Source: Camelus dromedarius
Lineage: Eukaryota
DNA: 64,000 nucleotides
Reading direction: 5' to 3'
NCBI RefSeq assembly: GCF_036321535.1
Contig: NC_087451.1
Coordinates: 42,718,001-42,782,000, forward strand
Positions 12,039-61,791 of this stretch are shown piece by piece. Both the position numbers and the translations under genes were made by a program. Under the pieces are notes generated by a model. That model did not search any database, was not told where the DNA came from, and worked only from the letters and a program-made list of their open reading frames with translations. The first letter of the stretch is position 1. Every line of letters starts with the position of its first letter.

Positions 12039-20823
<8,785 letters not shown>

Positions 20824-39900: not shown

Positions 39901-41821
39901 GCAGGGCACCATGGGAGGAGATTGGGTTTTTCCAGCCAGCTTCTCCAAGACAAATAGCCCGTTCCTGGTTAGAAGCATGTTACTAGCCACTTGTATGTGC
40001 TTTTCTATTTACAGAGCTCAGCCACAGAACAACCTTTATTATGCCCAGTATAGAGATTCATAGAGTGAGAATCAGAGAAGCCAAGAATTGGTCCAAAGTC
40101 TACTGGGTAGACCAGTGCTAATAGAACTTTATGCAACGATGGAAATGTTCTCTGCCTGCAGTGTCCAATATGTGAGCCACTAGCCACAGGCAGCTATTGA
40201 GCACTTGAAATGTAGCTAGTGTGACTGAGGAACTGAATTAAAATTTTTTTTGGTGGGGGAGATAGGTTTATTTATTAAATAAACTGGGGAGGTACTGGGG
40301 ATTAAACCCTGGACCTCGTGCATGCTTACCACTGAGCTATATCCTCCCCCCAACCCCGGATTTTTAATTGAAATTGAAATAGCCACTTGTGACCAGTGGT
40401 AACAGTATTGGACCAGGGCACATTTGAAGAAGACAGGCTATCCCTCAAATCCAGACCTGACTCCCAGCACGAGTGCTCTCTGATGAGCTTTGTTAGGCCA
40501 GTGTAGTGGGCGTCATGGAGAAGACGAGGGACCTGTCTCACCTGGTGTGGAACTCCTCTCCCTCCCCTCACCCTGGCAGGGCTGAAAAACTGGGTCGTAG
40601 CTGAAGACGTGGTGTTTAAACCTGTGGCAGCCCCTTGGAGTCCGGAGCACCAACTGCAGCGCCCACAGCTGACTCGGCAGGTCCTGGGAAGGGAGGATCT
40701 GACAGCTTTTCTTTTGGGGAGCCCCCTTCCCCGCTACCTTTACTTGGCTAGCAACCAGACTAATGCCTGGGGTCACCAGCGCGGGTATCGAATCCAGATC
40801 CACAGCCCCTTCGGCATACACATGCCTCTGGACAGCGACATGGAGAGGGCCCTCAGCTGGGGGAGGTGAGGAGGGCCCTGGGCACTGGGTGGTAGGGAAG
40901 GACCAGTCCCCTTCCCATCCTGGCTCTTGGAGACCCCAACTCACTACCCTTGCTCCAAACCTCATCTCAGATCCAAGTAGATATGGGGTGGGAAATGGTC
41001 TCAGACAGAAATCTGATCCAAAGGACTTCGGGGCTGATAAAGGCCCTTGGCATTTTCTGATACCACCTTCCTACAAACATTCCTGGTCAGATACCAGCTC
41101 GCGGTGACTCGGAGGAAGGAGAAGGAGTCACAGAGCAGCAGCATCTATTACCAGAATGACATCTGGACACCCACTATGGCCTTTGCTGACTTCATCAACA
41201 ATGAGACCCTCTTAGGAGAGGTTGGTAGCCCTAGGGACACAGAAGAGGGGCTCCCCTGAGCCTGGTGTCTTGGCTGCCCGGCCCCTGGCTATAGGATGGA
41301 GGGAATGGTGGGTTTCCCACCATTTGATTAGGAGCCAGGGAGCTCCCTAATGACCAGAAGGGTCATCCCTTCCCGGGGTGAGATTAGCCCTGGGACTTAG
41401 ACCACCCTACGGCTTCTCAGGGTTTATCAAACCTTGGGCCTGAGGCTGGGCGGGGGTGGAAGCAGGCGGGACTGGAGGTTGGGGATTGTGGCTGAGGGGA
41501 GATTCTCTGCAAGGGTCTCACCTCCAAAGTCTCTGGCTCCTCCTCTTCCTTCAGGACCTGGTGGCTTGGGTTACAGCCAGCTTCCTGCACATCCCCCACG
41601 CTGAGGATGTCCCCAATACAGTGACTCTGGGGAACAGAGTTGGCTTCTTGCTCCGACCCTATAACTTCTTTGATGAGGACCCCTCCATCTTCTCCCCTGA
41701 CAGCGTCTACTTTGAGAAGGACCAGAATGCTGGGCTCTGCAGTGTCAATCATGTGGCCTGCATCCCCCACCTGGCGTCCTGTGTCCCGGATCTGCCCCCT
41801 TTCTCTTACCAAGACTTTTAG
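36945..41821 (+). CDS. AOC2: Copper-containing amine oxidase 2 (retina-specific type), 756 aa, 4 exons
   Basis: Exons 36945-38532, 40580-40865, 41091-41220 and 41555-41821. N-terminal TM anchor [17 protein letters not shown]2-type active-site motif SSVGNYDY (TPQ Tyr465 at 38337), catalytic Asp (RYLDS), Cu ligands HTH and FLHIPH. Confidence 0.95.
40114..40420. mobile_element. MER3-like hAT MITE interrupted by a SINE, AOC2 intron 1
   Basis: CAGTGCTAATAGAACTTTATGCAACGATGGAAATGTTCT...GCCACTAGCCACA...AGCCACTTGTGACCAGTGG...TATTGGAC, split at about 40244. Confidence 0.55.
40244..40351 (-). mobile_element. tRNA-derived SINE (camelid-type) with an internal deletion
   Basis: Family consensus in reverse, lacking about 12 nt after CATGCTT. 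Confidence 0.8.
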
Positions 41822-42842
41822 CCCTGAGTGTGTGGTGGGACACGGAGTGGGGTGCCAAGACATGTACCATACTCTCTGTTCCCACTTCCTGCTCCCCTGA
41901 CACTCCACCCTTGGGAAACAGCCTCCTATCACATAAACCACCATATAGCCTTTTGGTTAATTCTTATTTCCAGTTCATTTTTTTAAAATGATGAATTTAT
42001 AGAAATGATGTTATTAAAATATTCAAGCAAAAACACCCCAAATCCTACCACTCAGAAATGGCTAGCATTCACATTTGGTGAATGTTATTCCAGACATTTC
42101 TTCATGCATGTGCATTGAAACGGAAGAATAGATAGAATTTTGTAAAAATCGGAGGTGTGTGTAATTTATAATAAAAAGTATTACAAGATTTTTACTTGAA
42201 TTTCTTCTATTTTTGAAGTTTCTAGAATCTCCCAGAGAATACTAAAGACTCTGGCCAAGGAAATTAGCCATGGAGGAGTAGGGGAGGGGAACGGACCTGG
42301 CCAAGAAATGCTGCCGGGGACAATGAAGGGCTGGGAGTGGGGTTTTCCTGGAAGGAAGACAAGAGTTCCAAGGTATCAGAAAAGAAACATCTGGCCCTGG
42401 GGAAGTGGGGACTGGAGGAAGAAATGGGGCTGAGGGGGACGAGGGGCTGCCTCCTTGCTGGTGGTGCATTTCTGTGCTCAGGCTGGTCAGTTGCATTATT
42501 TTGAAATCCCCTCCACCCCTTCCCCCTACCTCAGCTCTCCTCTGTTCCAACCCTGACCCAGAGAGCAGAGTCTGAATTGGAGCCTGGGAGACAAAGCCAT
42601 GTAAGGTCTATGGAAATTGCTGCTACCCTGCTTCAGGCCCGCCCTCCAACCCCAGCCTGCCCCGCCCCCTCCCCAGCCTTCCCTGCTCTTCCCACCCTCA
42701 GTCTCCTTTGCGTCGGAATACTGAGAACCTCAGCCAGAGTCCAGAGCTCCCAATACAGGGGTTAAAAGAGACCTTCTTCAGCTCGCCTGAGAATACATAT
42801 CTCCATTTTTGTTCAACCCTCCATCTCTATGTTCTTGGGACA

Positions 42843-45800
42843 ATGAACCAGAAGACCACCCTGGTGCTCCTCGCTCTGGCTATCATCACTATCTTTGCCT
42901 TGGTGTGTGTCTTGCTAGCTGGCAGAGGAGGAGATGGGGGTGAATCCAGCCTGCCTGCCTTCTGCCCCTCCGTATCTCCCAGTGCCCAGCCCTGGACACA
43001 CCGTGGCCATAGCCAGCTGTTTGCAGACCTGAGCCGAGAAGAGCTGGCAGCTGTGATGAGATTTCTGACCCAGAAGCTGGGGCCAGGACTGGTGGACGCA
43101 GCCCAGGCCCAACCCTCAGACAACTGTGTCTTCTCAATAGAGCTGCAGCTGCCCCCCAAGGCTGCAGCCTTGGCCCACCTGGACAAGGGGAGACCCCCGC
43201 CTGCCCGGGAGGCACTGGCCATCGTCTTCTTTGGTAGACAGCTCCATCCCAACGTGACTGAGCTGGTGGTGGGACCACTGCCCCACCCCTCTTACATGCG
43301 GGATGTGACTGTGCAGCGTAATGGGGGACCCCTGCCCTATCACCGACGCCCTGTGCTCACCCGAGAGTACTTGGACATAGACCACATGATCTTCAACAGA
43401 GAGCTGCCCCAGGCTGCTGGGCTCCTCCATCACTGCTGCTCCTACAAACGCCAAGGACAGAACCTGGTGACAATGACCACAGCCCCTCGTGGTTTACAGT
43501 CAGGGGACCGGGCCACCTGGTTTGGCCTCTACTACAATATCTCAGGGGCTGGGTATTACCTCAATCCTGTGGGGTTGGAACTACTGGTAGACCACAAGGC
43601 TCTGGACCCCACCGGCTGGACCATCCAGAAAGTGTTCTTTCAAGGCCGCTACTATGAGAGTCTGGCCCAGCTGGAGGAAGAGTTTGAGGCTGGCCGGGTG
43701 AATGTGGTGGTGGTCCCAGACAATGGCACAGGTGCATCCTGGTCCCTGAAATCCCCGGTGCCCCGGGGTCTGTCTCCCCCTCTGCAGTTCCATCCCCAGG
43801 GTCCCCGCTTCATTGTCCAGGGGAGTCGAGTGGCCTCCTCATTGTGGACTTTCTCTTTTGGCCTTGGAGCTTTCACTGGCCCAAGGATCTTTGACATCCG
43901 CTTCCAGGGAGAACGTTTAGCTTACGAGATCAGCCTCCAGGAGGCCTTGGCCGTCTACGGTGGAAATACCCCAGCAGCAATGATGACCCGCTATATGGAC
44001 GGCAGCTTTGGCATGGGCAAGTACTCCACACCTCTGACCCGTGGGGTGGACTGCCCCTATCTGGCCACCTACGTGGACTGGCACTTCCTTCTGGAGTCCC
44101 AAGCCCCCAAGACACTACACGATGCCTTCTGTGTGTTTGAGCAGAACCAGGGCCTCCCACTGAGGCGACACCACTCATATTTTCACTCCCACTATTTTGG
44201 GGGCCTTCAGGAGACTGTGCTGATCATCAGATCTGTGTCCACCTTGCTCAATTATGACTACGTGTGGGATATGGTCTTCCATCCCAGTGGGGCCATAGAA
44301 GTCAAATTCCATGCCACGGGCTACATCAGCTCAGCGTTCCTCTTTGGTGCTGCCCGAAGATTCGGAAACCAGGTTGGGGAGCACACGCTGGGCACCATCC
44401 ACACCCACAGTGCCAACTTCAAGGTGGATCTGGATGTGGGAGGTAAGACATCCTGGCGGAGGCAAGGATTCAGAAGAGGAGCCTAAAGAGTTGTCTGCAT
44501 TTGCTTTGAGTTTTATGGAGGTTTTCCAGGAAAGGAAGATCTGAGCCTGAGTGGTTTTGGAATTTCATGCTTCCTCTTTTGCTAGATGGGAGAGAGCTGG
44601 CTGCTGAATGTCACTGAGAGGTTAACTCACTGGCTGGGTGCAGCCCTGCCACCCTCTCTCCACTTGATTTCATCCGAAAATCTTGGGCAATAGCTCAGCT
44701 CAGGCAGGATCTGGGCTAAGGGTCCCTATTGCCCTCTTCCTTCCCTGGCACTTATATGGGCTTCATTTTAGCGAGGCAGACATTTGTTTTTTGGCTCATC
44801 TGTGTCTGGCCTGCAGTGCTGGTGTTTTGGAAGATCTGTTTGCTTTCTGCCGAGTCCCTGGCACATGTAGGCTAATCAGGGAATATCCCAGATTGTACGT
44901 TTCCTTGGAAGGTGTTCCCTCCTCTTCCCTGAGTTTCCCTCTGGGCACAATACATTTAAGTGTGAGGGGTAGAGTGACTGCTGTGGAACATTCTGGGTAG
45001 TTCCTGGAGTTGGTGGTCACATAGAGAGCCAAGGCTACATGATGTCTTAGAGGCCTTGTCATTTTTCACTGTCCTTCCCCACATTGAGTTAATCACCAGA
45101 TTTTTTTCTGTTCTGCCTCTGAAATATCCCAAACTGCTCGCTAGACCCCACTGCCATCCCTCTGTTGAGCCAGTCCTCTCTTTGCCATTTTGACTATTCT
45201 TCCTCTCAGATTCAGGGCTCACTCTGCACCCAGAGGGACCTACCAGCCCATGCCAGCATGCTCCCTCACACACCTCCCACGTTCCCCATCACCTATGGGA
45301 CCCTGTCCGCAGAGGGACCTACGAAGCCCTTCCCCTCAGAGTGCAGCTCCTGCCTGCCTTTCATATTCTCCCCCAGGGCTGCATTAGCTGCACACACACC
45401 CTGCCTGGCCCTGGACACACACAGCGCCCAGGCCAGTCGGGCTGTTTTTCTTTTGCTCATGTTTTGGCCCTGCCTAGAATGCCCTGCCGTGTCATCTCTG
45501 CTGATGACATCCCCTGAGGACAGGCTGAAGCGTTGCCCAGGAAGGCCCCCACTCCTGCCTGCACCTGTGTTCCTCTAACCTTGAATCGTGAGCGTGCTCT
45601 TCTGGCATTGCAGGCCCCTCAGGGCTTTGCTCCTCTGTGGCTTCAGTGGGAGCAGGAGGGTAAGAATAAAGTTTCATTCACCTGTATGTCCCCCGCGCCG
45701 AGCACAGGCCTCTCCACTAATGGGTGTGAACGGATGAATGAATGAAATCCTTGAAGACATATTTCACAGGTCAACAGCTTTGGCTGAAAGATGGGGGATA

Positions 45801-47830
45801 ACTTGTCAAGACGGGAGAGAAGCAGGGGGCACACTCAGTCTGGGCTTCTCTTTGGCCTCCACTCTGAAGCCAGGTGGGGGCAGAGTCCAGAGAGGGTAGG
45901 GCCACCGTATGACCAGCCCTCCCTCCCACCCTTCCCCTTCACCCACCTCCACCCAACCCTTGCAGGAGTGGAGAACTGGGTCTGGGCTGAAGATATGGCT
46001 TATGCCCACTCGGTGGTACCCTGGAGTCCTGAGCACCAGATACAGAGAATGCAGGTGACTCGGAAGTTGCTGGAGACGGAAGACCAGGCTGCCTTCCCCC
46101 TGGGAACTGCCCTGCCTCGCTACGTGTACCTGGCCAGCAACCACAGCAACAAGTGGGGCCACCCTCGGGGCTACCGCATCCAGGTGGTCAGCTTTCCTGG
46201 GGAGCCGCTGCCCCAGGCCAGCTCCATGGAGAGAAGCCTCAGCTGGGCGAGGTGGGTGGCACGGTGTGTGTGTTTTGTGGAGTGGGAAGGGGCGGAGAAT
46301 GAGAGTGAGAAGGGAGTGTTGGGAGGGGCACTCGGGAACTCAGTTCAAATTTTATGCGAGGTGAGAGAAGAACTCAAAAAGGATTTCCTGGGTATCAAAA
46401 TTCACACAGTGGATGGATACATGGCCCCCTTGGAATACTAAAGCCCAGATGGCAGAATTCTTTTCTGTTTTGGAGAGGCCATGCTGTGAAATGACAAGGG
46501 GTGAACAGGAGGACATGGAAAGATGTTGGGCAACCCATTAGGGTGGCATCAAAGTCACTGTGTGGATGAGATGGGAAAGCTGAGGTCCATGTGCTGGGCT
46601 CCCTTCCCCAATAATCAGGAGGCAGGATGGGGCTAGTGACCTGGAGGCCTGACTAGTACAACTCTAGGTACAAGCTGGCCGTGACCCAGAGGAAGGAGAC
46701 AGAGCCCACCAGCACCAGCATCTTCAATCAGAATGACCCCTGGACCCCCTCTGTGGACTTCTCTGGCTTCATCAACAATGAGACTATTGCTGGAGAGGTC
46801 GGTTGACCGCGTGGGGACTGAGGGAGGCGGGCAGGGGCCCAGAGATGAGCCCCGCCTTTTCCTGGGGGTCCCTGAAAGCCATCTATCTCCTCAAAGGCAG
46901 AGCTGACTCCTGCCTTCTGTGGATCCGATCATTACCTGTTGAGGGAATCTTCCCAAGCTGGGAGTTCACTCGTACACACTGGCTGAGGCACCAGCCTCTC
47001 CTCAAGACACTACAGCCTTCTAAGTCTCAACTTTGTGGACTTGGCCCTTTTAGGGCCCCAGGACTCAGGAGTGCTGAAAGTCACCAAGGAAGGCCACATA
47101 GCTTATATCTAAAGCTTCTTCAGTCCTGGCTTTACCACTAAAGGATTAATTTTTAAATGTCGGACTTTTCTGCTTCCCAAGCCCTGAACTTCCCTCCTCC
47201 ATCCGCCTCTCAGTTAGAGTTTGGGAACTCTCTCACAGAGTTAGGGGAGAGGAGCTAAGTAGCTGGTGGGTGTCATCATTCCTCTGGGGGTGGGTAGGCT
47301 GATGGAGATGCTATGGGGAACATCAGAGATGGTGGGTGTGGGCTGGCACTGGGGGCAGGTGTGGCTCCCAATATGAAATTGACTATGCTTTGACTTCTGG
47401 GCTAGTAGGAAACATGTTTAAAGAGTTAAAATCCTTCTGAGGGAAGGTGGGCTGGCAAGGTGAATCATTCCATACAAGGCCACTGTGGGGGAGGGGGCAG
47501 GTATGTCTTTAGCAAAGCCAGGCCTTATAATCCTTTTTCTTCACCCCTTGCTAGGACCTGGTGGCCTGGGTGACACCTGGTTTCCTGCACATCCCACATG
47601 CAGAGGACGTCCCCAACACGGTGACTGCAGGGAATGCCGCAGGCTTCCTCCTCAGACCCTACAACTTCTTTGACTACGACCCCTCCTTTGATTCTGCTGA
47701 CTCTGTCTACTTCCGGGGGGACCAGGATGCTGGGGCCTGTGAGATCAACCCCCTGGCTTGCCTTCCCAAGGCTGATGCCTGTGCCCCCCACTTCCCTGCC
47801 TTCTCCCATGCAGGCTTCGCTCATAACTAG
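42843..47830 (+). CDS. AOC3: Copper-containing amine oxidase 3 (VAP-1/SSAO, membrane primary amine oxidase), 763 aa, 4 exons
   Basis: Exons 42843-44442, 45966-46251, 46668-46797 and 47555-47830. Type II anchor [25 protein letters not shown], Asp386 (43998), STLLNYDY with TPQ Tyr471 (44253), His520/His522 and RGD 726-728 (47714-47722). Numbering is colinear with human VAP-1. Confidence 0.95.
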
Positions 47831-48291
47831 GTGGGTCCTGGGATGAGGATTTTGACTGGGGCCCTTGGACCAGGAAGTGTGGGAGGGGAGGCAACAGGCA
47901 CTGGGCAGGGCAGCCTGTGCCCTCCTCACACCCCAAGGTCCTCTCTCTCCCATTGTCCTCCCTGCCTCCCCCTCCCTGCTGGGAGCATCCTGAGCCTGTG
48001 ACACCTGACACAGGGGGCACTTGGCTTTGTGGACCCCAGACCTGCTGGGCTCCTGTCCCTGAGAGGAGAGGAACGGCCATTCGGGACCGTGGAGTGATGA
48101 TGGTTAAGCTTTTCCCAGAAGACTCCTGTTTTTGGTTTTGCTTTTTGGCTGTCCCAAACCTTTTTAGGACATCCCAATTCTCTCCTAAGACTCTCCAGTC
48201 CTTCCCTTGGGAGGCAAGGAAGAAGGCTCTCTATGGGGATAGCCCCCTAGAGGCCCCAGGGCAGGGTTCCTGCCAGGCCTATAACGCCATG

Positions 48292-48297
48292 AATAAA
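48292..48297 (+). terminator. Probable AOC3 polyadenylation signal AATAAA
   Basis: First AATAAA downstream of the stop codon, about 460 nt away. Confidence 0.65.
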
Positions 48298-51200
48298 GCT
48301 GGAAGAGGCCCCTTGGCCCATGGTCACTCTCATACTAGTCTTCCTTGTCTCTCTCTTCCTTCTTGCCTAACCATCTCCTGTTCCTACCTGTTCTTATATC
48401 CTGGGATTTCCCTCCCAGCCCTGAAGGGATGTTCCTCTGCCCTGATGCTCCCCTAGCCCTCATTTCTTAACTCTGGTCTCTTCTCCTGGCTCTAGGCCTG
48501 TGGAAGTCTCAATATGCAAGGTACATCTAGTTTGAGAGGACGCCTGTCTGTCTCCCTGTGTCTGGGAGCTGCCCTTACCCCCAGTCCTGGGGCAGGGTGT
48601 GTTTCCCCACAATTTTCTCTGCCCATTTGTATAGCCCTGCCTTGCATTCTCTGGGAGAGGATGAATAGAGTCAGCAGCAACTCAACTTAGCACTTTAAGT
48701 GGATTTGTGGGTGCAGTGGTAATGTGGAGTGGTCATTTTGTGCCAGGTCTGTGTGTGACCAATGCCCTCTGTACTCTGTAACAGCCAACAAGGGAGGCTG
48801 GGTGGGCACCAATTGTGAGAAGCAGGAAGACCCAGGAACTCCAGCCAGGGGGCCAGGGGCTGTCCAGTCACATGTGGGCATGCAAATAAGGCCAGCCTCT
48901 GGGGGAGGAGCCTCTCCCCATCACTGTCCTGGTTTGAGGCAGGGGAGGAGGGTCTGGATTAGGGATTGGTATACAAATAGAAAGAGATTGGAAACAGCAG
49001 AACCATCCTTCCCTAGAGGATTGGTTAAATAAATTCTGATACAGCCTTAACAATGCAATACTATGCAATTATAAAACTAATTACATCTCTTTATAGGGAA
49101 TCATCTTCCAGTGAAAGGGGCAAGGTGCAGAACTGTGTATAGGGCACTTCCATTTGTGTATTAGAAGGGAGGATAATACAAATATTTTCTTATAGATGCA
49201 TATTCAGAAGAAACAGGTAACACAGGTTGCCTCTGGTGAGGGAAACTGGGAAGTGGGGACCAGAGAGAGAGGAGACTTAGTATTATAAATCCTTTTGTAC
49301 ATTTTGAATTTTGAACCATAATTTTACCTATTCATTTATTATTATTCAGATAATAAATGGGCCCAAACAAGAACTATTTTTTTCTTTTACAGACGGGCCT
49401 TAAAAAGGGTGAGGTAGGGGAGGGTAAAGTGAGTTAAGAGATGGGCCTGGGACTCAGTTTTCTCATTTTTGAGACCCAGAGAAATGGGTGTGGCCTCTGG
49501 TAACTCCTTTGCCTTCTCTTGAGTGTATATCTCCAGGGGAAATATTAAACTTCAGCCAATCTCTCTTTTGCTCTGTCTCGTGCGCTCTCTCTCTTTGTTT
49601 CTCTCAGAAGAGGGGGCAAGGGGAAGCAATGGGGAGGGGTGACTTCTGCCTGCTGGGAGCCCAGGCCAGGCCAGGAGGTGCCATGCAGGGACCAGATTTT
49701 GGATGCTTCTCAGCTTCTGCCCAGAGGGAGATCACATCCAGGGAGAGCAGGCATCACGGAAGTTTCTGCTACCTTCTGTCCTGCCCCAAGTCCAAGTTCA
49801 CTTCTGGGTCAGTGGAACAATGGATGGAGACGAGTCAGTAAGCTGGAGAGAAACCAGGTTCCAAAGAACAGGGAAAAAGACTTCAGTAAGGAGAGAGGGC
49901 CAGGGATGGCTGGATGAATTTATAACATGGCCTGGGGTAGAAGCAAGAGTGACAGAGGACAGAAAGAGATTTAAGACAAGGAGAGACTGAAGACTGAGAC
50001 AGAGGAGAAAAAGGGATGTCATGACCAACGTGGCTCTGATACTTACTTGATACTACTTCTTTCTATGACCTGAGTAGTTTACCTTCTCCATTACATGCCT
50101 TTTGTTTCCACCTCCTTCTGGCTCCTTTTTATGGTCAGTTGCACAACAGTCAGCTGGAGGGAAAAGGAAAAAAGGAATGCTGGTGTCCACACCTCCCCCT
50201 ACCCCGATTTAATAACTTGAAACTCCTTGTCTTGTAACCCATCTCCAGACCCAAGAGGGTGAGTGTTTGCAAGTGGTGAGTGTGCATGTGAATGTGTGTG
50301 AAGGCTCGCTCACAAGCCTTGATCTGAAAAAGGGACTGTGGTTATGTCTCTCTACATGTCATCATGGGGATAACACCCCTGTTCCAGGCCTCAGTGGACA
50401 TGGAGATCATGAGATCGTTAGCCCTGCTGGGGTTTAGAGGGCTGCAAGTTGGACCCCCAGCCCCCTACCCCACCCACTCTCTCCCTTAGACCCCTGAGGC
50501 TGGAAGGACTGTCTGCCTCAGACTTGTGGTCAAGCGATAGGCAGGAATAGTGACCAAAGATGTCAGGTTCTAAAAGAACTGGTGTCTCCAAGGCCAGAGA
50601 TCTTTAGGACTTGCCCCCATTGCCCTCCTAAGAGGAGATGGACAAGGGGCCACCCGAGGCTAGGTCAGGGGCACAGCTGGGACTTCTCCAGGAATGTAGA
50701 CACGGGGAGCCCCTGTGAGGAGCACAGGATGCACTCACCTGCCTCTGCTCTCCTCCTGCAGCGCCTGGGAAAGTCTCCCTCTGCAGTGGAAGAGAAGGAT
50801 TCCTACATGCATTCAACAATGATTTCCCAAGTGCCTCCTACCTGCCAGGCACCTTGGGAGGGGCTAGAGGGACAGGTAAAGGGGCAATTACACGAGGGAC
50901 TTTCAGAGAGGAGGCGGGAGGTAGCAGGGGCTCCTAACCCAGACTTGAGGATGAGGAAAGGCTCCCTGAGGGACATGATGTCTAAATTGATCCTGGCAGA
51001 AGAGTAGAAGCTAGCCCCGGGAGAAGGAAGAGAATGGAGAGAAGGTTCTAAAAAGAGGAAACAGCATCTTCAAAGGCCAGGAGGTGACACAGTGGCACCA
51101 TACAAGTACCCAAGTTTGTTGACAGGTGGGTGGGCTGTGAGGGGAGTCCCGAGGGGCAAACAGAGGGCAGAAGAGGCAGGTCCTTGCTGCCATGGTTGCT

Positions 51201-53588
51201 CTAAGGAAAACAGGGAGCCATGGAAGGATTCTCACCAAGGGAGTGACAGGGTCAGAGTTGCCTTTGAGGACATTCCCTCCAACCCAGGTACAATGAATAG
51301 AGTGGACAGATGGCTTAGCCACAGGGCGGTGGGTCAGAGGTGAGAAATGACGGTGGCCGGAATGCAGGGGGAGGCCGGCAGAGGACTCCCGTGGGAAATC
51401 TGGCCTGAGGAGGCCATGCTTGCAGAGAGCCGGGATCAGAACCCCACATCCAGCTGCCTCCCTCCCCACTTCCCACCTCTGCTGAGGTCACAGATGAAGT
51501 AAAGAAGGATCCCTGGCCACTGACTCTGGTTTTTCCCGCTGTGCAGCCCATGACCTCCTGAGTGGAAGAGCATTACTGTATTTAATGATCACTTACCGCC
51601 TGGGAAAGTCACTTGCTGATTAAAGTACAATTCCACCCAACAATCAGTCCCCTTGGTAGTTAGCGTGGTGACGGCATAACTGGTTAGATGATCCTTTACA
51701 CAGTGCACAGTGGGTTTGGAAAAAAGTGAAATCCCTAAAAAAAAAAATGTGTCTGAAGCCCTCCTGACAGCTTTTTTGAATGGTTTGGCAGTGAGGATGG
51801 GCTCATTAATTCTACGGCCTCCTTACCCGTTCTAAGGGGAAACCCACCACTTCTGGCTCCTCCTAGAAAGTTCTCTTTCAGTTATCCACTCATCTCCCCG
51901 TACTTTAAATCTCTCCCTTTTGACTGGCTCTTCCTCTCAACTTTCTAAGCTTCTCCCAGGACCCTACCTCTCCTGGCCGGGGGTCTTCTCTCAGCCTGTG
52001 CCCTCCAAGGAATGTTCTTTCTACCCCTCCTGGGCTTGCTTCCTTTCCTCCCACCTCTGTCACTCCTCAATGCCCTGCCCTCCCTCTGCTGACCCACAAG
52101 CCACAGGCCCTGCTCTGACGAAGGTCACCAGTGACTTCCAGATGCAAAATCCGCAGGCCTTCCCAGCCTAGTTTCTGGACCTCTCAGTGGCATTTGACTA
52201 CTCGCTTCTTAAACTCTCTCTTATCTTGACCTCCCCACATTCTGACTCCTCCTCATCTATATTTGCTGCTTCTCGGGCTCCTGTGCTGGCTCCTTGCCCT
52301 CTGCTCTGCCCACAGGTCCCCTCAGCCCCACACCTCAGTATTTTCCAGGACTCTGTCCCTGGCCCTCCTGTCTCCTCTCTCCAGAGGTCCTCTCTGGGTG
52401 AGCTCAGGCTCTCCTTAATTCATGACTAATATTTGTTGTTTTGCCCAAGTCTGTATTTCTAGCCTAGAGGAACCTCTCTCCTGAACTCCTAGCCCATAGA
52501 GCCAATGGCCCTTTTTTCTGGGCATCTGTGCTGGGGTTCCCCCTGAGCACCTCAAACTCAAACTTGTTGGTTTCCCCTTTAAACTCACTGCTCTCCATGA
52601 AGGTCCAACTAGTGAGAGCCTCTCCCCACCCCAAGTCACCCAATGGGAAACCTTTGTGTCTTTGTGGTGTCATCTAAGAGGCTGTGCCCTTACTCACCCA
52701 CCCACCCAATCAGGCACTGAGTCCCATCTACTCCACCTACAACATCTGTCCAGACTCATCCTTTCCTCTGTGTCCTCAAGGCCACTCACCTCACCCTGGC
52801 CCTTTGCCTCCTGCCTGGTCTCCTCGACTCTAGTCTGTCCTATACCCAAGCCCTGCTCCGCGCCTCAGCCAGAGCCATCTCCCTAGAATGCGGATCAGAG
52901 TGGAGTGACTGGGTATACGGAGGGGGGTTCCCACTGGCTGCACATGGTCTCTAGGGCAGCAGCTCGGTTGAAGCACCACGTCCTGGGGCTCAGTCTTCAA
53001 CCTGAAGGCCAGGAGTGGGCTCTGGCTCCCAGGGATAAGCTCATCTTCAACACATTCATAGAGGCTGGGGCCAGGTCTGTCCAAAGAGAAATAAGACCTA
53101 GTTAGGGGAGTAGGGTGTGTGGTCCTGTCTCCTAATTCTTCAAAAGAGACGCCTTTTCAACAAGTTTTCAGAGTGTTTGACATGATGATTGTGAAGCCCA
53201 GGATGAAATGATGTCAGAAGGAAACAATGTGACAGTGAGACACTTAGGGAAGGTGGTCAGAGGGGGTGCCTTCTTACATCCTCATCCCCCCACCAGGCAA
53301 GGCAAAGGCTCTCCCTCCCACCACCTGATCATTGCCCACTTCCCATCTGACAGCCTGGCATTACCCAACCAGAGCAAACATTCACGACCTTTGCTTGGTA
53401 ACACTGGTCAGGACAAAAAACACTAGCCATCTTAACATTGTGTTCTTGGCTGGGAGCAAAGACCATAACTTACCAAAGGCCCAGATTCATGTTCCCAGGC
53501 TGGGAAAGCTTGCCTTGTGGCCAGGGCTGGGCCTTGACCTTAGATTCTACTCCTCCTTATTATGAAACCCAAATGGCTCATTTCAAAT

Positions 53589-54053
53589 TGAGATAGGCTG
53601 GGACCTGGGACCCTCTACCGGAGTGTCTGCTCTTGTACCTGAACAAATGTCTCTGGGAGCAACAGAATACAAAGGAACTATAAGGGCTTAAAAATAACTG
53701 CATCCATGCATGCGCACTCAGGGCAATTATGAACAATAAGATACAAAAAGGTCACAAACCAACTGCCACTTCTGAGGTGCCAGAGCAAAAGTAGGGGACT
53801 GTGCATGATGCCTGCACACAGCACCAAGGGGGTGGACAGACCACCTAAGCCACCCCTGGAACTGACCCACCAAGCCCTCTAACCCTCACCTCATTTAAGG
53901 AAACCAGTCTAACCTCCACAGAGAGCAAGCAAGGGAACCTGTCTTTTGTCTTTGCTCCCTCCTGCTGCAGCACGAGTCCCTTGACTGAATTTCTCATCTG
54001 GTCTCTTATCAATTTCTATTGATTAAAGAGTCCAAGAACCTGGGTCAGTAACA
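53589..54053 (+). mobile_element. Solo LTR of a class I (ERV1-like) endogenous retrovirus, 465 bp
   Basis: Starts with TG (TGAGATAGGCTGGGACC) and ends with CA (GGGTCAGTAACA). Exact 4-bp TSD AAAT (53585-53588 / 54054-54057) and ATTAAA poly(A) signal at 54022-54027. No internal retroviral sequence. Confidence 0.85.
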
Positions 54054-55472
54054 AAATGACCCCTTATGTTTAATTTCCATATCAAAATATAGCTGATTGC
54101 ATAAATGAGCTGATATCTGGATAATCTGACCTTTCTGGTGTTGATTTACCTGGTTTAACTGGTTCCAAGATTTCTTAACTCTTTTCCTGCAATTACTACT
54201 TTGCTTAAAACACAAGGCTTCCCGACCTGCCTGCCTCCCCTCCCACCTCGCACCAAGGACACTGACCTTTTGGCCGTTCCCTGCCCATGTCAATGCTGTT
54301 TCAACTTTCTGTACCTTTTCACCTCCTGTTCTCTTCAGCTGAACATCCAGTCTGTTCTCCCCCAGGCCCATGCATCTGTCTATCGTGGCTTCCTGAAGAA
54401 ATGTTCCTGGACATGTCCAGGTTAGAAAGTCTTCTCCCCCAGGATCATAAAGGAAAGCATGTCCCCTCTCTGGAACCCTCAGTTTCTCTTAGTTCTGGAC
54501 CTGGCTGCCCAGAAAGTGGAGGTGCTTTCGCTCTCTGCCTCTACAACATTTTGGAGGAGGGTTTCCTGGAGATGAGGGTTCTAGGCTGCTAGGTTAATTT
54601 TATAGTCAGTTTTCCAGGCACCCTGAGCTCTAACCTGACCCATCAGCCCTGCTCGAGGGATGGATGGGGGTCTCTGTTATACTGCCACCCCACCACCTAC
54701 TCTGACTTCGGATTGGCTCTACCCTCCTGCCCGCGAATGCTTCCCTCCAGTGATTTAGGGTCCTCAGGGCCTCCAGTATGTTGACCTGGCTCAGCCCTTC
54801 AGCCCCCCAGCTCTTCCCAGGTGATTTGTGTTCTCAGTAGACCTCTCAAGCCTCCCAGGGAGTGGATGCCAGTAGGATTCTGGTTGATGGGGGGTGGGTA
54901 GCAGTAGACAGTGATGAGGAGCAGAGCCTGGAGGGCATCACAAACTAGAGAGAGGAAGGAGGGAAGCAAGCTGGAGGGGTGAGCACAGGTGAGTTTTGCT
55001 TGCAGCCTTGTAGCCAGGAGAAAGATTCCATCCAGAGGGTAGAGGAAGAGCCCAAGGACAGTCCCTTTCTGCCCCTGTCAGTTCTTCCTCTTGCTGCACT
55101 CGCTCCAGCTGTGTTAATGCCAAAGCCCACCCCTCCCCTGCTTCATTCCCAACCTTGAACTTGAGTGTTTGACTTGGAACAGGAGGACAGGCTTACATGG
55201 GCCATTGAAAGTCCAGGTTCCCACCTGAGCCCCGCCTCCCAAGCCTGGCCAGACTCCTGGCACCGTCCACTTCCACCCCCTCCCAACCCTCTGTACTTGG
55301 CTGCTTGTCTTCAATGTACCCATCATGCCTCTTTCCCAGAAAAACCACCCAGAGACCAAGCACCTCTGGAGACTGAAAGAGACATCCTGCACTCAGGTCC
55401 TGTCGGTCGATCTTTTTATCTTGCATTCTGCATTCTGATTCAAGAGACTGAAGACAGCCAGGAGCTTCAGCT

Positions 55473-58400
55473 ATGACCCTCTTCATTCTTTTGTGTAGTG
55501 TTCTGGTGATGGCCATGGGTGAAGGTGGTGCTGGGAGTAAGGAAGGAGTAGGGAAGGAATGTAAACCCAGCTGCCCCTCCGTATCTCCCAGTGCCCAGCA
55601 ATGGACACACCATGGCCAGAGCCAGCTGTTTGCAGACCTGAGCCGAGAAGAGCTGGCAGCTGTGATGAGCTTTCTGGCCCAGAAGCTGGGGCCAGACCTG
55701 GTGGACGCAGCCCAGGCCCAACCCTCGGACAACTGTGTCTTCTCAATAGAGCTGCAGCTGCCCCCCAAGGCTGCAGCCTTGGCCCACCTGGACAAGGGGA
55801 GACCCCCGCCTGCCCGGGAGGCACTGGCCATCGTCTTCTTTGGTAGACAGCTCCATCCCAACGTGACTGAGCTGGTGGTGGGACCACTGCCCCACCCCTC
55901 TTACATGCGGGATGTGACTGTGCAGCGTAATGGGGGACCCCTGCCCTATCACCGACGCCCTGTGCCCATCCGAGAGTACTTGGACATAGACCACATGATC
56001 TTCAACAGAGAGCTGCCCCAGGCTGCTGGGCTTCTCCATCACTGCTGCTCCTACAAACGCCAAGAAAAGAACCTGGTGACAATGAACTCAGCCCCCCGTG
56101 GTTTGCAGTCAGGGGACCGGGCCACCTGGTTTGGCCTCTACTACAACATCTCAGGGGCTGGGTATTACCTGAACCCCTTGGGGTTGGAACTACTGGTAGA
56201 CCACAAGGCTCTGGACCCCACCGGCTGGACCATCCAGAAAGTGTTCTTTCAAGGCCGCTACTATGAGAGTCTGGCCCAGCTGGAGGAAGAGTTTGAGGCT
56301 GGCCGGGTGAATGTGGTGGTGGTCCCAGACAATGGCACAGGTGCATCCTGGTCCCTGAAATCCCCAGTGCCCCCGGGTCTGGCTCCCCCTCTGCAGTTCC
56401 ATCCCCAGGGTCCCCGCTTCATTGTCCAGGGGAGTCGAGTGGCCTCCTCATTGTGGACTTTCTCCTTTGGCCTTGGAGTTTTCACTGGCCCAAGGATCTT
56501 TGACATCCGCTTCCGAAGGGAGAGAGTGGCCTATGAGGTCAGCCTCCAGGAGGCCTTGGCCGTCTACGGTGGAAATTCTCCTTCTGCTCTGAGAGGCCGG
56601 TATGCGGACAGCAACTTTGGCTTGGGCTACTTCTCCACACCTCTGACCCGTGGGGTGGACTGCCCCTATCTGGCCACCTATGTGGACTGGCACTTCCTTT
56701 TGGAGTCCCAAGCCCCCAAGACACTACACGATGCCTTCTGTGTGTTTGAGCAGAACCAGGGCCTCCCACTGAGGCGACACCACTCAGATGAGACCGCCTA
56801 CTATTTTGGGGGCCTTGCAGAGACAGTGCTGGTTATCAGATCTGTGTCCACCATGCTCAACTATGACTATATATGCGATTTGGTCTTCCACCCCAATGGG
56901 GCCATAGAAGTCAAAGTCCATGCCACGGGCTATATTGGTTCATCGTTCCTCTTTGGTGCTGCCCGAAGATTCGGAAACCAGGTTGGGGAGCACACGCTGG
57001 GCACCGTCCATACTCACAGTGTCAACTTCAAGGTGGATCTTGATGTGGGAGGTAAGACATCCTGGCGGAGGCAAGGATTCCAGTAGAGGAGGATGAAGTC
57101 TTCATGCCTAGCTTTAAAAATTGTCATTGAAACCTTAAAAATGTACAAGTATATGAAGTAAATGTGAAAGTCATCGAATTCCTTCGAGATTTTCACCCTT
57201 AGATGTCTGTTCTCTCATGCTTAAGAAAATTCTTCCGTCTTTTAAAACAGTGCGTCTGCAATTCTAGAGTATATTATGGTGTTTACTATGTACAAGATAG
57301 GCTATACTGATAGGCATATTTAGATTTTTACTATCAAATTTCAACCATACTGTACACATATATTGTCACTTCTGTTTTCTTGCATAACAACATATCACAC
57401 TCATGCAAGCAAGGAATATTTACTGAATGCATATTTGTGCCGAGCACTGCGCTTAAACAATTTAACAAAAGAAACAACGTCCCTGCTCTCAGGAGGTTTA
57501 CATTCTAATGGAGATGCAGAGAGAGCATGGAGAACTCCCAGAAAATGTGTGTGATAGAAATATTTTTACACTTAACCTCTTTGTGTCTCAGCTTAACTCA
57601 AGTATAAAAATGGTATAGGCAGCGCATTCCTCATAAGATTGTTGTAAAGATTAATGGTGACTATTTTAAAACCTTTTGTCTTTTGAAATAACTTTAGACT
57701 TAGAGAAAAGCTGCAGAGATTATACAGAATTCCCATAAACCCTTCACCATCTCCCCCTCATTTTAACGTCTCACATAACCATAGGATAATCAAAAGCAGG
57801 GAATTAATATTATTATCATACTATAAACCATAGACCTTAGGAGAATTTCATCAGTGCTTCTACTAATTTTCTTTTAGAAGATATTGGTCAATCATTTTGT
57901 AGGGTGTCTTTCAATTTGGGTTTCTCTAATATTTTCTCATAATTAGATTGAGCTTGTGTTTTTGTTTTTGTGGTTTTTTTTTTTTTTTGGCAAGAAAACC
58001 GCAGAAATGATGTATCTCCTCCCTAGAGCATCATATCAAGGGTACATGATGTCCATATGTTGTCTTATCAGTGATGTTGACCTCAAGCAGTTGTTTAACG
58101 TAGTGTTTTCCAGCTTCCTTCGTCGTAAAAGTTAGTATGTTTCCATTTGCAATTAACAAATATTTGGGGGAAATTTTTGATGCTGTGCAAATATACTATT
58201 TATTTTCTTCTCAAATTTCTTTTTTAAAATTTTTTTAAAATTTATTTTTAATGGAGGTGCTGGGGAATTGAACCCAGGACTTCGTGCATGCTAATTGAGC
58301 ATTCTACCACTGAGCTATACCCTCCACCCCTCTTCTCAAATTCTTCCCTGCTAATTTTAGCATCTATTGGTGGATTTTTCGATGCAACAATTATTGTTGC

Positions 58401-60512
58401 TGTTTCCCTCCTAGTCATTTAAATGTTTTCCCTTATTCTTTATACATTAATAATTGGAATTCTCCATAAGAAAGTCTTATCTCTCCTTTTCCCTCTATGT
58501 AATATATGTAATCATTTATTCATTACTGTATAAATTCATGGATATTTTATTCTAAGGGTTAAAACCCAGTACTATTGTTTATTTTGTTCCTTAAATTGTT
58601 CCAGTTTTGGCCATTGGGAGATCCTTCAGGTTGATTTCTGTGTCCTTCTGACATGCCGCCATCCTTTTTTAAGCATTTCTTTACTTTCTGGCACCATAAG
58701 ATGTTCTAAATCCATCTGGTATTTTCTCTGCTCCAGCCCTGGAATCAACCACTTCTCCAAGAATCTCTGGCTCCTTTATTGGAGAATAGTATGTAGAAGC
58801 CAAGATCTGGGTACCAGGTGTGCTCATTATTACTGGGATGTTGCTTTTAGGCTCTTATTGGACTTAGAAAATATATGTATGTATTAGAACTAACACAACA
58901 TGTCCCTCTTTATCTCTACATCTAAGCGATGGCAACTTTTCAAACACTTGGAACTGCGCCTGACACACACTGAGAAATATTAGCTATTGTTGTTGCTGTT
59001 ATTATCCACATGAGCCTACTAGTGTGGATATATCAGAATGAGAACTCTTTCCCTTTAATTGTCCTCTACAAGTAGGCACTGTAGAGTGTGGACTAGGAGC
59101 AGTAATCCACAAAAGGAAACTGAGGGTTTGCTCAAACAGTCTCTGCTCTCTTTGATCCTTGGAAGGTATGGAGGGAGCTTCCAGCATGTTTTGGTTTACT
59201 GCTCTTTGGTCTCAGATCACTTAAGTTGCCTCATAATATGGAACCTAGTTGGACTCTAATAAAATCATTCAAAATTCCAAATATTCAGGCAACAGACTGT
59301 GCCTTTGGCCTTCCTCTTAATTCCTTTCCAAACCCCAAACAATAGAAAACACCTGTAAGCTCCAGCAATGTTGGGCCCAGGGTCTGCCTTTCCTTCCTTC
59401 TAGCCTGCGTGTCTGCTGTCCATGTGTGATGGGACCACTTTATGTTGGTCTTCTCTGGGTCCTGTAGAGCCAGACCAAGACCTGGGTCCCCAGCCCTGTC
59501 ATGAAACTAACCAAGTGCCCTTGGTGACAAACCAGGGCACATTATTTAAATTCCCTAATTCTCAGTTATCCCATCTGTAAAATGGGAACAACTACAGTTC
59601 CTCCTTCATAAGATAGTTGTGCAAGTAGAGCATCACTACATGTAAAGTACTCAGCACCCTGCCTTGCAGAGCTTTTTCAAGTTCAACAATTGTGAGCTAC
59701 CACTGTTATTATTTACATGATAAGGCAGTCTGGTGATGCCATAAGGCTTCAGATGTGAGGTGCAGACCCTTTCCTCAGGTCAGAAAGAAACTGACTCTGC
59801 ACATTGCCTGCTCAACTGATCCAACCTCAGGTAAACCATTCTCCCTTTAGCTCCTCAGAGGGACAAGGTCACTGGAAGCCCAGTCACAAGACATCTGGGA
59901 TGATTACTGGATATGATATCCGGGGGAAGACTTTCTCCAAACTCTGGATCTGGGGTATCTTGACAAGAGGGGAAGGAAGCAAGGGGCACACTCAGTCTGG
60001 ACTTCTCTTTGGCCCCTCCTCAGAAGCCAGGTCGGGGCAGAGTCTAGAGGGGGTAGGGCCACCGTATGACCAGCCCTCCCTCCCACCCTTCCCCTTCACC
60101 CACCTCCACCCAACCCTTGCAGGAGTGGAGAACTGGGTCTGGGCTGAAGACACGGCTTTTGTCCCCACGGCGATACCCTGGAGTCCTGAGCACCAGATAC
60201 AGAGGCTGCAGGTGACCCGGAAGTTGCTGGAGACGGAAGACCAGGCTGCCTTCCCCCTGGGAACTGCCCTGCCTCGCTACGTGTACCTGGCCAGCAACCA
60301 CAGCAACAAGTGGGGCCACCCTCGGGGCTACCGCATCCAGGTGGTCAGCTTTCCTGGGGAGCCGCTGCCCCAGGCCAGCTCCATGGAGAGAGCCTTCAGC
60401 TGGGCGAGGTGGGTGGTGGGGTGCCAGAGAGGCACTGGGGGAGGCAGATTGTACAAGAAGCTCCATGTTGCTGGGAACCCAGGTTCCCCCACCTCCCGTG
60501 GGTGTGCATGCA

Positions 60513-60580
<68 letters not shown>

Positions 60581-61791
60581 CCCTGCAGCCACAATCTTAG
60601 GCCACTCAAAATGAATCCTACTGGTTGGATGGATGAATGGAGAGATATGTGCTGAATCAGATACAACAAAATGTTCCAGGTAGAATCTAGGATGTGAGCA
60701 TGTGGGTGTTTACTATTCTTTCAACTCTTCTCTATGTTTAAAATGTTTGCAATCAAGGTTGGAAGGGAAACAAAGAAGAAGAGAGGAGCACAGATCTGAG
60801 GGGGTGTCCCCTAAAATCCAAGCACATAAGATACTGAAATTGACCTAAGATGGGAATCAGGCTGTGTCTGGGCATATGCATCCATCTGGATGGACACATG
60901 AGCGACAGTCCCATCTGAAGTCTGAACAGCGGGCCAGTAGATGTTTGAGATACAGGATATTGAAGAAATGCAGGAACTTTAAGAGAGAAAGAACGGGAAG
61001 TGGACAAAGAATAATAAAGAGGTTTGATACCCTGAGACCTCTGTGCTCATTTCCCCTTCATGTCCCCACCCTAGTGCAGCTTCAGGCAGCGGGACGGGTC
61101 GATTGAACTTGGGGATCTAATCCAAATCCCCTGCAGGTACCAGCTGGCTGTGACCCAGCGGAAGGAGGAGGAGCCCAGCAGCATCAGCATCTACAATTTG
61201 AATGACCCCTGGACCCCGACCTTGGACTTCACGGACTTCATCAACAATGAGACCATCGCTGGGCAGGTGAGTCGAGAGGGAGGAGGTGGGGGTCAGAGGC
61301 GGACGAGGGGGAACAAGGACGAGCCACCTCATTCTCTCCTAATCCAGAGTCCTCCAGGGGGTCTTTGGAGCCCACCAAGGAAGAAAGCATTATAATTTCA
61401 CATTTTTCCTGGTCTGGTGAACTGAATCGTTCCACACAAGGCCACTGCGAAGGAGGGGGCAGGCATGTCCTTAGCAAAGCCAGGCTTCAAAATCCTCTTT
61501 CTTCACCCCTGCTAGGACCTGGTGGCCTGGGTGACAACCGGTTTCCTGCACATCCCACATGCAGAGGACGTTCCCAATACGGTGACTGTAGGGAACGGAG
61601 TGGGCTTCTTCCTCCGGCCCTACAACTTCTTTGACCAGGACCCCTCCTTTGACTCTGCTGACTCCATCTACTTCCGGGCAGACCAGGATCCTAGGGCTTG
61701 TGAGGTCAACCCCATGGCTTGCCTCCCCAAGTATGCAGCCTGTGCCCCGGACCTCCCTGCCTTCTCCCACGGGGGCTTCTCTTACAACTAG
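55473..61791 (+). CDS. AOC4: Secreted copper amine oxidase, AOC4/serum (plasma) amine oxidase type, 756 aa, 4 exons, intact ORF
   Basis: Exons 55473-57051, 60123-60408, 61137-61266 and 61516-61791, with no stops or frameshifts. Signal-peptide-like [16 protein letters not shown] followed by [14 protein letters not shown] (resembles bovine serum amine oxidase EEGGVGSEEGVGKQC), [17 protein letters not shown] (TPQ Tyr at 56862), Asp at 56607, HTH and FLHIPH. Located downstream of AOC3. Confidence 0.88.
57660..58900 (-). mobile_element. Old L1 fragment(s) in AOC4 intron 1
   Basis: T-rich L1M-like antisense segments (TTTTGAAATAACTTTAGACTTAGAGAAAAGCTGCA..., CCAGCCCTGGAATCAACCACTTCTCCAAG). Family assigned by recall. 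Confidence 0.5.
58218..58330 (-). mobile_element. tRNA-derived SINE (camelid-type) nested in L1
   Basis: Family consensus in reverse, with a perfect 12-bp TSD TCTTCTCAAATT (58206-58217 / 58331-58342). Confidence 0.9.
60513..60579 (+). repeat. Long (CA)n microsatellite in AOC4 intron 2
   Basis: Uninterrupted CA run of more than 30 units. Confidence 0.95.

Follow-up and report, generated by a model that had tools for sequence, protein, structure and literature searches.

Evidence for interlocus gene conversion that leaves channel-coding islands paralogue-specific in the camel amine oxidase genes AOC3 and AOC4

How can two neighbouring genes be identical letter for letter over hundreds of nucleotides and at the same time encode proteins that differ around the active site? 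The question is raised by a 64,000-nucleotide (nt) stretch of the Camelus dromedarius genome (contig NC_087451.1), here called the window, whose + strand carries a tandem array of copper amine oxidase genes, AOC2, AOC3 and AOC4, all three of them intact. All coordinates are positions in the window unless another locus is named, and codon and residue numbers are those of VAP-1/AOC3. An original prediction, made from the letters alone, had proposed recent gene conversion between AOC3 and AOC4 that spares the parts of the genes that determine specificity. The reading preferred here is that interlocus gene conversion homogenises the AOC3/AOC4 scaffold while the islands coding for the active-site channel stay paralogue-specific, probably through selection, and we put the probability of this reading at about 0.88.

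All four of the perfect AOC3-AOC4 tracts that had been claimed, of 238, 187, 100 and 174 nt, are free of mismatches and are edged by mismatches on both sides, with offsets between the two genes of 12609 in exon 1 and 14157 in exon 2. As AOC3 exon 2 begins at 45966, 72 of the 100 nt of the third tract are intronic, as described, and intron 1 also begins with 29 identical nt. The divergence claimed for the remainder was equally borne out: exons 3 and 4 are 82.9 and 85.6% identical, with local BLAST alignments around them at 72-86%, and the interiors of the introns give no BLAST alignment between the paralogues even at a word size of 7. The exon-1 block has 1528 columns, of which 101 differ; when these were shuffled, runs of 238 and 187 nt had P≤5e-5, and with the two large islands taken out the values were P=0.0075 for 238 nt and P=0.0005 for 187 nt. 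A Sawyer-type permutation over 503 variable sites gave p=5e-5 for the camel, alpaca and warthog paralogue pairs, and was not significant for the camel-warthog and camel-donkey orthologue pairs.

The duplication itself is ancient, older than the placental radiation. Introns included, camel AOC4 is collinear with AOC4 of both donkey (L003) and warthog (L004), at 77-82% identity, and camel AOC3 and its introns are collinear with warthog AOC3 at 80-82%. The signal-peptide-type N-terminus of camel AOC4 is also found in the horse, cattle, pig, dugong, elephant, tupaia and hare proteins. It is the orthology of the introns across orders, together with an N-terminus common to Afrotheria, that places the duplication before the placental radiation.

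Synonymous divergence (dS) between the camel paralogues is not uniformly low across exons and introns, the pattern that the prediction had named as speaking for a simple recent duplication; it forms a mosaic. It amounts to 0.057 in the scaffold (codons 41-204, 214-353, 395-445 and 499-534), to 0.47 in the islands (codons 354-394 and 446-498), and in exons 3 and 4 to 0.52 and 0.34, where orthologue values for comparison are 0.02-0.05 for camel-alpaca and 0.27 for camel-warthog. Synonymous differences are in excess in the islands (Fisher 3e-9), and the proportion of synonymous differences (pS) in a sliding window spans 0 to 0.46. A slowly evolving scaffold without conversion is ruled out by the scaffold orthologue dS of 0.27 and by the quartet counts given below (S51/P0), and simple recent duplication is excluded by the intron orthology, the mosaic of dS and the approximately unbiased (AU) tests that follow.

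DNA trees of the camel, alpaca (L001 and L002), warthog and donkey genes, with AOC2 as the outgroup, take opposite forms in the two kinds of segment. In the scaffold tree AOC3 and AOC4 of the camelids form one clade and AOC3 and AOC4 of the warthog another, each at 100%, and the AU test rejects the paralogue tree (difference in log-likelihood 332, p=8e-5). In the island tree the AOC4 genes of camelids, warthog and donkey form a clade at 99%, and it is the lineage tree that is rejected (difference in log-likelihood 66, p=1.6e-7), as it also is for exon 3 (p=0.005). Converted tracts thus group by species or lineage and islands by paralogue, the outcome foreseen for such trees. Site counts in camel-warthog quartets, with P for paralogue-type and S for lineage-type sites, give P0/S51 for codons 41-204, P1/S38 for codons 205-353, where the single P site is T212N, P21/S3 for codons 354-394 and P8/S0 for exon 3. 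From these opposite counts it follows that camelids and suids were homogenised independently, both sparing the same island. Partition trees, AU tests, the dS mosaic and the quartets together support the concerted evolution that had been proposed.

Species-type sites lie at 43127, 43472, 43614, 43657, 43813 and 46113. The Asn525 (His525Asn) reported in both camel genes is present, and among the placentals sampled it occurs in both paralogues only in camelids. Exon 4 of warthog AOC3 and AOC4 (15759-16034 and 33548-33823 of L004) is 100% identical, as against 85.6% in camelids, so that the pattern of tracts is lineage-specific. At the protein level, within-species AOC3-AOC4 identity over codons 41-204 is 93-99% in pig, hare, cervids, bovids and sirenians, where orthologues share 82-89%, and within-species island identity is 61-88%, which suggests that the same mosaic is found in other mammalian orders, to judge from the predicted proteins.

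The description of the conversion as recent holds for the exon-2 tracts and for a few sites that postdate the split of dromedary and Bactrian camels, but not for most of the exon-1 mosaic. In exon 1, 105 AOC3/AOC4 differences are common to camel and alpaca, as against 5 sites of the species type (2 more show a third pattern), which dates the exon-1 mosaic to before the camel-alpaca split. Camel and alpaca parted roughly 15-25 million years ago. Exon 2 is different. In the tracts at 45894-45993 and 46061-46234 camel AOC3 and camel AOC4 show 0/72, 0/28 and 0/174 differences, and AOC3 of camel and of alpaca differ from each other at 8/72 sites in the intronic part of the first of these tracts and at 18/174 in the second; in the immediate flanks the relation is reversed, with 24/111 (45783-45893) and 32/69 differences between the camel paralogues and 2/111 (45783-45893) and 3/66 between camel and alpaca AOC3. 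Exon-2 dS between camel and alpaca AOC3 is 0.26, against 0.02-0.05 elsewhere, and several alpaca AOC3 exon-2 states agree with the outgroups. The reversal between tract and flank and the outgroup states of alpaca AOC3 mean that AOC4 overwrote AOC3 within Camelus; exon 2 and the adjoining intron sequence are thus an AOC4-to-AOC3 conversion that took place after the alpaca split, and it is also present in two further Camelus assemblies (L005 and L006).

Exchanges younger still are visible at single sites. In the dromedary, AOC4 carries the state of AOC3 at 43540 and, inside the second perfect tract, at the two neighbouring sites 43735-43736; Bactrian-type and alpaca AOC4 are without the AOC3 state at 43540, and AOC4 of Bactrian or wild camel and of alpaca has GG at 43735-43736 in place of it. 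At 46113, in the fourth tract, both dromedary copies have T and both Bactrian copies and alpaca have C. On the Bactrian side there are exchanges at 43357, 43773 and 43805, the last derived in both Bactrian copies. As these exchanges came after the dromedary-Bactrian split, conversion is ongoing and runs in both directions.

The exchange is not confined to two genes, and AOC2 codons 41-170 belong to the same concerted-evolution system, which is therefore larger than had been stated. Downstream of this 5' block AOC2 is about 70% identical to AOC3 and AOC4, and the block edge at 37447/43357 is sharp and coincides with the end of the first perfect tract. AOC2-AOC3 dS is 0.23 in the block vs 1.4 downstream. 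The warthog AOC2 5' block is 97.8% identical with a dS of 0.03, and the camel/warthog quartet for this block has 3 paralogue-type vs 15 lineage-type sites.

What, then, is left different? The amino-acid differences between the camel paralogues cluster at residues 172-173, 205-213, 355-363, 376-394, 446-450, 468-477, 489-498 and 543-551, a set that contains the clusters originally listed (172-173, 205-213, 378-395, 446-450 and 468-477) and is slightly larger. The paralogue-diagnostic pairs TT/NS (212-213), KY/YF (393-394) and LL/ML (468-469) are as given. Within a species, AOC3 and AOC4 share 72-74% of nucleotides over codons 354-394 in camel, alpaca and warthog, vs 86-91% between orthologues, and the sequences of the codon 355-394 island from camel, alpaca, warthog and donkey sort by paralogue. 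At the protein level AOC3-AOC4 island identity is 61-78% in pig, hare, cervids and sirenians. Import of the islands from AOC2 was ruled out, the AOC4 island being 62% and the AOC3 island 66% identical to AOC2.

Whether the differences line the substrate channel can be judged against a published set of channel residues. The active-site channel residues of human VAP-1 include 173, 212, 394, 446-448, 468 and 761 (PMC7144023), and camel AOC3 and AOC4 differ at all of these positions. Counted over the whole protein, 8/19 of the published channel residues differ vs 80/704 other residues (p=8.6e-4), and among residues within 3 positions of a channel residue 18/71 differ vs 40/519 (p=3.5e-5), an enrichment in keeping with the original claim. 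Residue 212 is described as subfamily-specific (PMC7144023): VAP-1 has Thr, the plasma enzyme (SAO) Asn and the retina enzyme (RAO) His. Camel AOC3 (T), AOC4 (N) and AOC2 (H) fit this scheme exactly. The T212N difference is a single base (ACC/AAC) kept amid homogenised sequence in camel, alpaca and warthog; over codons 79-335 warthog AOC3 and AOC4 differ only at codons 204, 212 and 257 and have no synonymous difference. Ratios of nonsynonymous to synonymous divergence (dN/dS) in the islands are 0.1-0.4, with 0.12 for the AOC3 island between camel and warthog, which indicates purifying selection within each paralogue.

These observations would be explained if repeated non-allelic conversion copies tens to hundreds of bases between AOC3 and AOC4 in both directions, with AOC2 joining the exchange for codons 41-170. 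The outcome would be that most of exon 1, exon 2 and the adjoining intron ends are homogenised within each lineage, and that codon 212, codons 355-394, 446-498 and 543-562 and exon 3 stay paralogue-specific, presumably as converted haplotypes over these segments fail to reach fixation. The likeliest cause would be that such a conversion swaps the residues behind the differing active-site channels of the membrane and the plasma enzyme; high local divergence probably also hampers the formation of heteroduplexes at the islands. Judging from the channel residues, the two camel enzymes would be expected to differ in substrate preference. Selection as the protector of the two channel entrances, which the prediction had proposed, we only infer: it is strongly suggested for codon 212, the survival of T212N in three homogenised lineages being hard to explain without it, and is plausible for the large islands.

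Several points weigh against this reading. Only 5-6 exon-1 species-type sites set camel apart from alpaca, and some of these may be parallel mutations. The exchanges found only in the dromedary (43540, 43735/6 and 46113) come from one assembly and could be polishing artefacts. The comparison at the DNA level covers camelids, one suid (warthog) and one equid AOC4 (donkey), and the pattern across orders is drawn from automated protein gene models, to be treated with caution. Sparing of the islands is not universal, as the AOC3 and AOC4 islands of the gundi (P0057/P0061) are 100% identical, and mink AOC3 (P0035), which has the membrane-type N-terminus, has AOC4-type residues at 378, 381, 391, 393, 394 and 468. 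Finally, with island dN/dS values of 0.2-0.4 positive selection is not shown. Residue 468 of AOC3 is Met in pig (P0031) and Leu in warthog. To judge by their protein models, conversion may have crossed the islands in some lineages (mink, gundi and pig).

The alternative that survives best is a mechanical one, in which a divergence of about 25% makes mismatch repair abort heteroduplexes at the islands, tracts stop at their edges and no selection on the channel is involved. While the large islands, at 74-82% identity, are far below the identity needed for efficient conversion and the tract ends do fall at island edges, the one-base mismatch at codon 212 forms no barrier to a heteroduplex and is nevertheless kept in camel, alpaca and warthog. 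Nor would such a barrier be expected to leave the exon-2 island as it is found, with retained AOC3 states, 4/5 of them nonsynonymous, interleaved with sites in the AOC4 state. The absence of channel selection would be consistent with an island dN/dS of only 0.2-0.4 and with the overwriting of the gundi and mink islands without obvious gene loss, but in either paralogue these islands are conserved between orders (AOC3 island dN/dS 0.12 between camel and warthog). On balance this mechanism seems unlikely to be the whole explanation, although for the large islands it is a real alternative to selection.

Far less probable is that the perfect tracts, or the newest of the exchanges, are artefacts of the dromedary assembly, in which paralogues would have been collapsed or cross-polished. 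Such errors do have a candidate precedent, as an older short-read Camelus ferus model (P0126, EPY88154.1) has AOC4 states at AOC3 codons 233-363 that the newer assembly of the species (P0125, L005) does not have; P0126 is probably a short-read chimera, and chimeras would then occur at the AOC locus. The dromedary-specific events are likewise seen in one assembly only. The mosaic as a whole, on the other hand, recurs in alpaca (GCA_048564905.1), in two other Camelus assemblies (GCA_009834535.1 and GCA_048773025.1) and in warthog, the exon-2 conversion is present in both of the non-dromedary Camelus assemblies, and two Bactrian-type assemblies concur on the exchange sites 43773 and 43805. The tracts also sit within unique, collinear introns, and 94-98% of the sampled 31-mers of 42800-46400 are contained in 20 runs from 9 studies, which is weak support.

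A recent origin of AOC4 by duplication of AOC3 within the camelids, followed by fast divergence of its channel islands under positive selection and without conversion, can practically be dismissed. In its favour, exon 1 is 93.5% identical overall and replacements are concentrated at channel residues. Against it, the introns of camel AOC4 have their orthologues in AOC4 of other orders and are unalignable with those of camel AOC3, the island dS of 0.47 exceeds the camel-warthog orthologue dS, the AOC4 islands group with AOC4 of pig, elephant, dugong and donkey, and for the islands a tree by lineage is rejected in the AU test.

Table 1. Genes, exons, homology blocks, perfect tracts and islands of the AOC2-AOC3-AOC4 array, in window positions
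Feature	Position	Counterpart	Strand	Remarks
AOC2, retina-type amine oxidase	36945-41821		+	intact, 756 aa
AOC2 exons	36945-38532, 40580-40865, 41091-41220, 41555-41821		+	
AOC2 5' block, about codons 41-170	37029-37447	AOC3 42939-43357; AOC4 55566-55965	+	89% identical
AOC3, membrane VAP-1 type, predicted N-terminal anchor	42843-47830		+	763 aa
AOC3 exons	42843-44442, 45966-46251, 46668-46797, 47555-47830		+	
Exon-1 homology/conversion block	42962-44488	AOC4 55571-57098	+	93.5% identical overall, internally mosaic (self-alignment)
Perfect tract 1	43119-43356	AOC4 55728-55965	+	238 nt; ends at end of AOC2 homology block; species-type site 43127
Mini-island, codons 205-213	43455-43481	AOC4 56064-56090	+	G205E, Q206K, T212N, T213S, all nonsynonymous
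Perfect tract 2	43570-43756	AOC4 56179-56365	+	187 nt
Island, codons 355-394	43905-44024	AOC4 56514-56633	+	74% nt identity; K393Y, Y394F; flanks catalytic Asp386
Island, codons 446-498	44178-44336	AOC4 56787-56945	+	82% nt identity; Arm-I tip 446-450, L468M beside the topaquinone (TPQ) residue Tyr471
AOC3 intron 1 interior	44489-45782	AOC4 intron 1, 57099-59946	+	unalignable between paralogues; collinear with warthog AOC3 intron 1
Exon-2 homology block	45790-46266	AOC4 59947-60423	+	92.9% identical (self-alignment)
Perfect tract 3	45894-45993	AOC4 60051-60150	+	100 nt; 72 nt intron 1 and 28 nt exon 2
Exon-2 island, codons 543-565	45994-46060	AOC4 60151-60217	+	AOC3-specific states at 45994, 45996, 46005, 46010, 46049
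Perfect tract 4	46061-46234	AOC4 60218-60391	+	174 nt
AOC3 exon 3, intron 3, exon 4	46668-47830	AOC4 61137-61791	+	not homogenised in camelids; exon 3 groups by paralogue
AOC4, secreted plasma type, predicted signal peptide	55473-61791		+	756 aa
AOC4 exons	55473-57051, 60123-60408, 61137-61266, 61516-61791		+	

In the gene models each of the three genes has four exons and GT-AG introns, and AOC3 and AOC4 are direct tandem genes 12.6 kb apart. Their products are identical to the dromedary proteins P0123 (AOC3) and P0131 (AOC4). The N-termini differ in predicted topology, a membrane anchor in AOC3 and a cleavable signal-peptide type in AOC4. The TPQ motif (T/S-X1-X2-N-Y-D) reads STLLNYDY in AOC3 and STMLNYDY in AOC4, and Tyr471, the catalytic Asp386 and the copper ligands His520, His522 and His684 are all present in both; AOC2 has His212 and a VG motif preceding NYD. 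The domains PF02727, PF02728 and PF01179 are carried by P0003, which has the same AOC3 exon-1 sequence, and by P0001, from the 90%-identity cluster of AOC4. An 886-aa predicted 'isoform X2' of camel AOC3 (P0003/P0124) matches AOC3 to residue 733 and continues into unrelated downstream sequence.

Some further features of the locus may be recorded. In the exon-2 island, codons 546-550 of camel AOC3 (46001-46015) form a cluster of replacements with a local dN/dS >1 on very few sites; Y546 is common to Camelus AOC3, and H548 and V550 are found only in the dromedary. Camel AOC4 has a Trp475Cys replacement (56874-56876) four residues past the TPQ tyrosine, giving NYDYICD instead of NYDYVWD; of all the proteins sampled, only the AOC4 of camel and alpaca has it. 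A perfect (CA)33 microsatellite (60514-60579) lies in AOC4 intron 2, about 120 nt beyond the end of the exon-2 conversion tract, and CA-rich sequence is found at the corresponding place in alpaca and donkey AOC4.

PMC12058724, which cites Lopes de Carvalho et al. 2019, says of AOC3 and AOC4 in mammals that they 'differentiate in a species-specific manner' and are syntenic, and ascribes the species-specific pattern to 'different evolutionary pressures'. Full-text literature searches, which did not cover Lopes de Carvalho et al. 2019, found no proposal of gene conversion between AOC genes. What the present analysis supplies, compared with the published AOC phylogenies, is the mechanism of conversion and a map of the tracts, and conversion accounts for the published clustering of AOC3 and AOC4 by species despite their old age and synteny. 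It also means that AOC3/AOC4 orthology is not assignable by whole-gene trees or percent identity and has to be read from the N-terminus, the introns, the islands and exon 3 alone. The spared residues T212N, A378S, M381R, M391L, Y394F, L468M, L625F, F648Y and Q650L are candidates for those that separate plasma amine oxidase from VAP-1, a list that bears on which animals are suitable as models for VAP-1 inhibitors. The AOC locus, with perfect tracts of 100-240 nt common to the paralogues, is in addition a hazard for assembly.

A wider view can be offered tentatively, at somewhat less than even odds. AOC2-AOC3-AOC4 may form a placental-wide three-gene array of concerted evolution with conserved boundaries at about codons 41/171. 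The segments spared again and again, namely exon 3, codon 212, codons 355-394 and parts of 446-498, would in that case be the smallest set of differences that sets membrane-type apart from plasma-type substrate specificity. Conversions that cross the islands, for which mink AOC3, gundi and the pig Leu468Met are candidates, would then move the channel of one enzyme into the other, a transfer that would be one source of the species differences known in the pharmacology of VAP-1 inhibitors.

Conversion with protected sites is a process already known, and camel AOC3/AOC4 are a new and clean example of it. The red and green (L/M) opsins of primates are tandem paralogues homogenised by conversion, introns included, with a few function-defining codons kept different. 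The AOC tandem resembles this generally known case in being homogenised, introns included, with function-linked codons that differ, and departs from it in that the spared units include two long islands (120-160 nt) as well as isolated codons, that three genes take part and that the same islands were spared independently in camelids and suids. For RHD/RHCE, and in the models of Innan and of Teshima & Innan, divergence is kept by selection in the face of conversion and peaks at sites where selection is diversifying or paralogue-specific. The AOC genes are similar in combining an old duplication with a mosaic divergence that looks young, and differ in that the evidence is phylogenetic, from four camelid assemblies with warthog and donkey, rather than from polymorphism.

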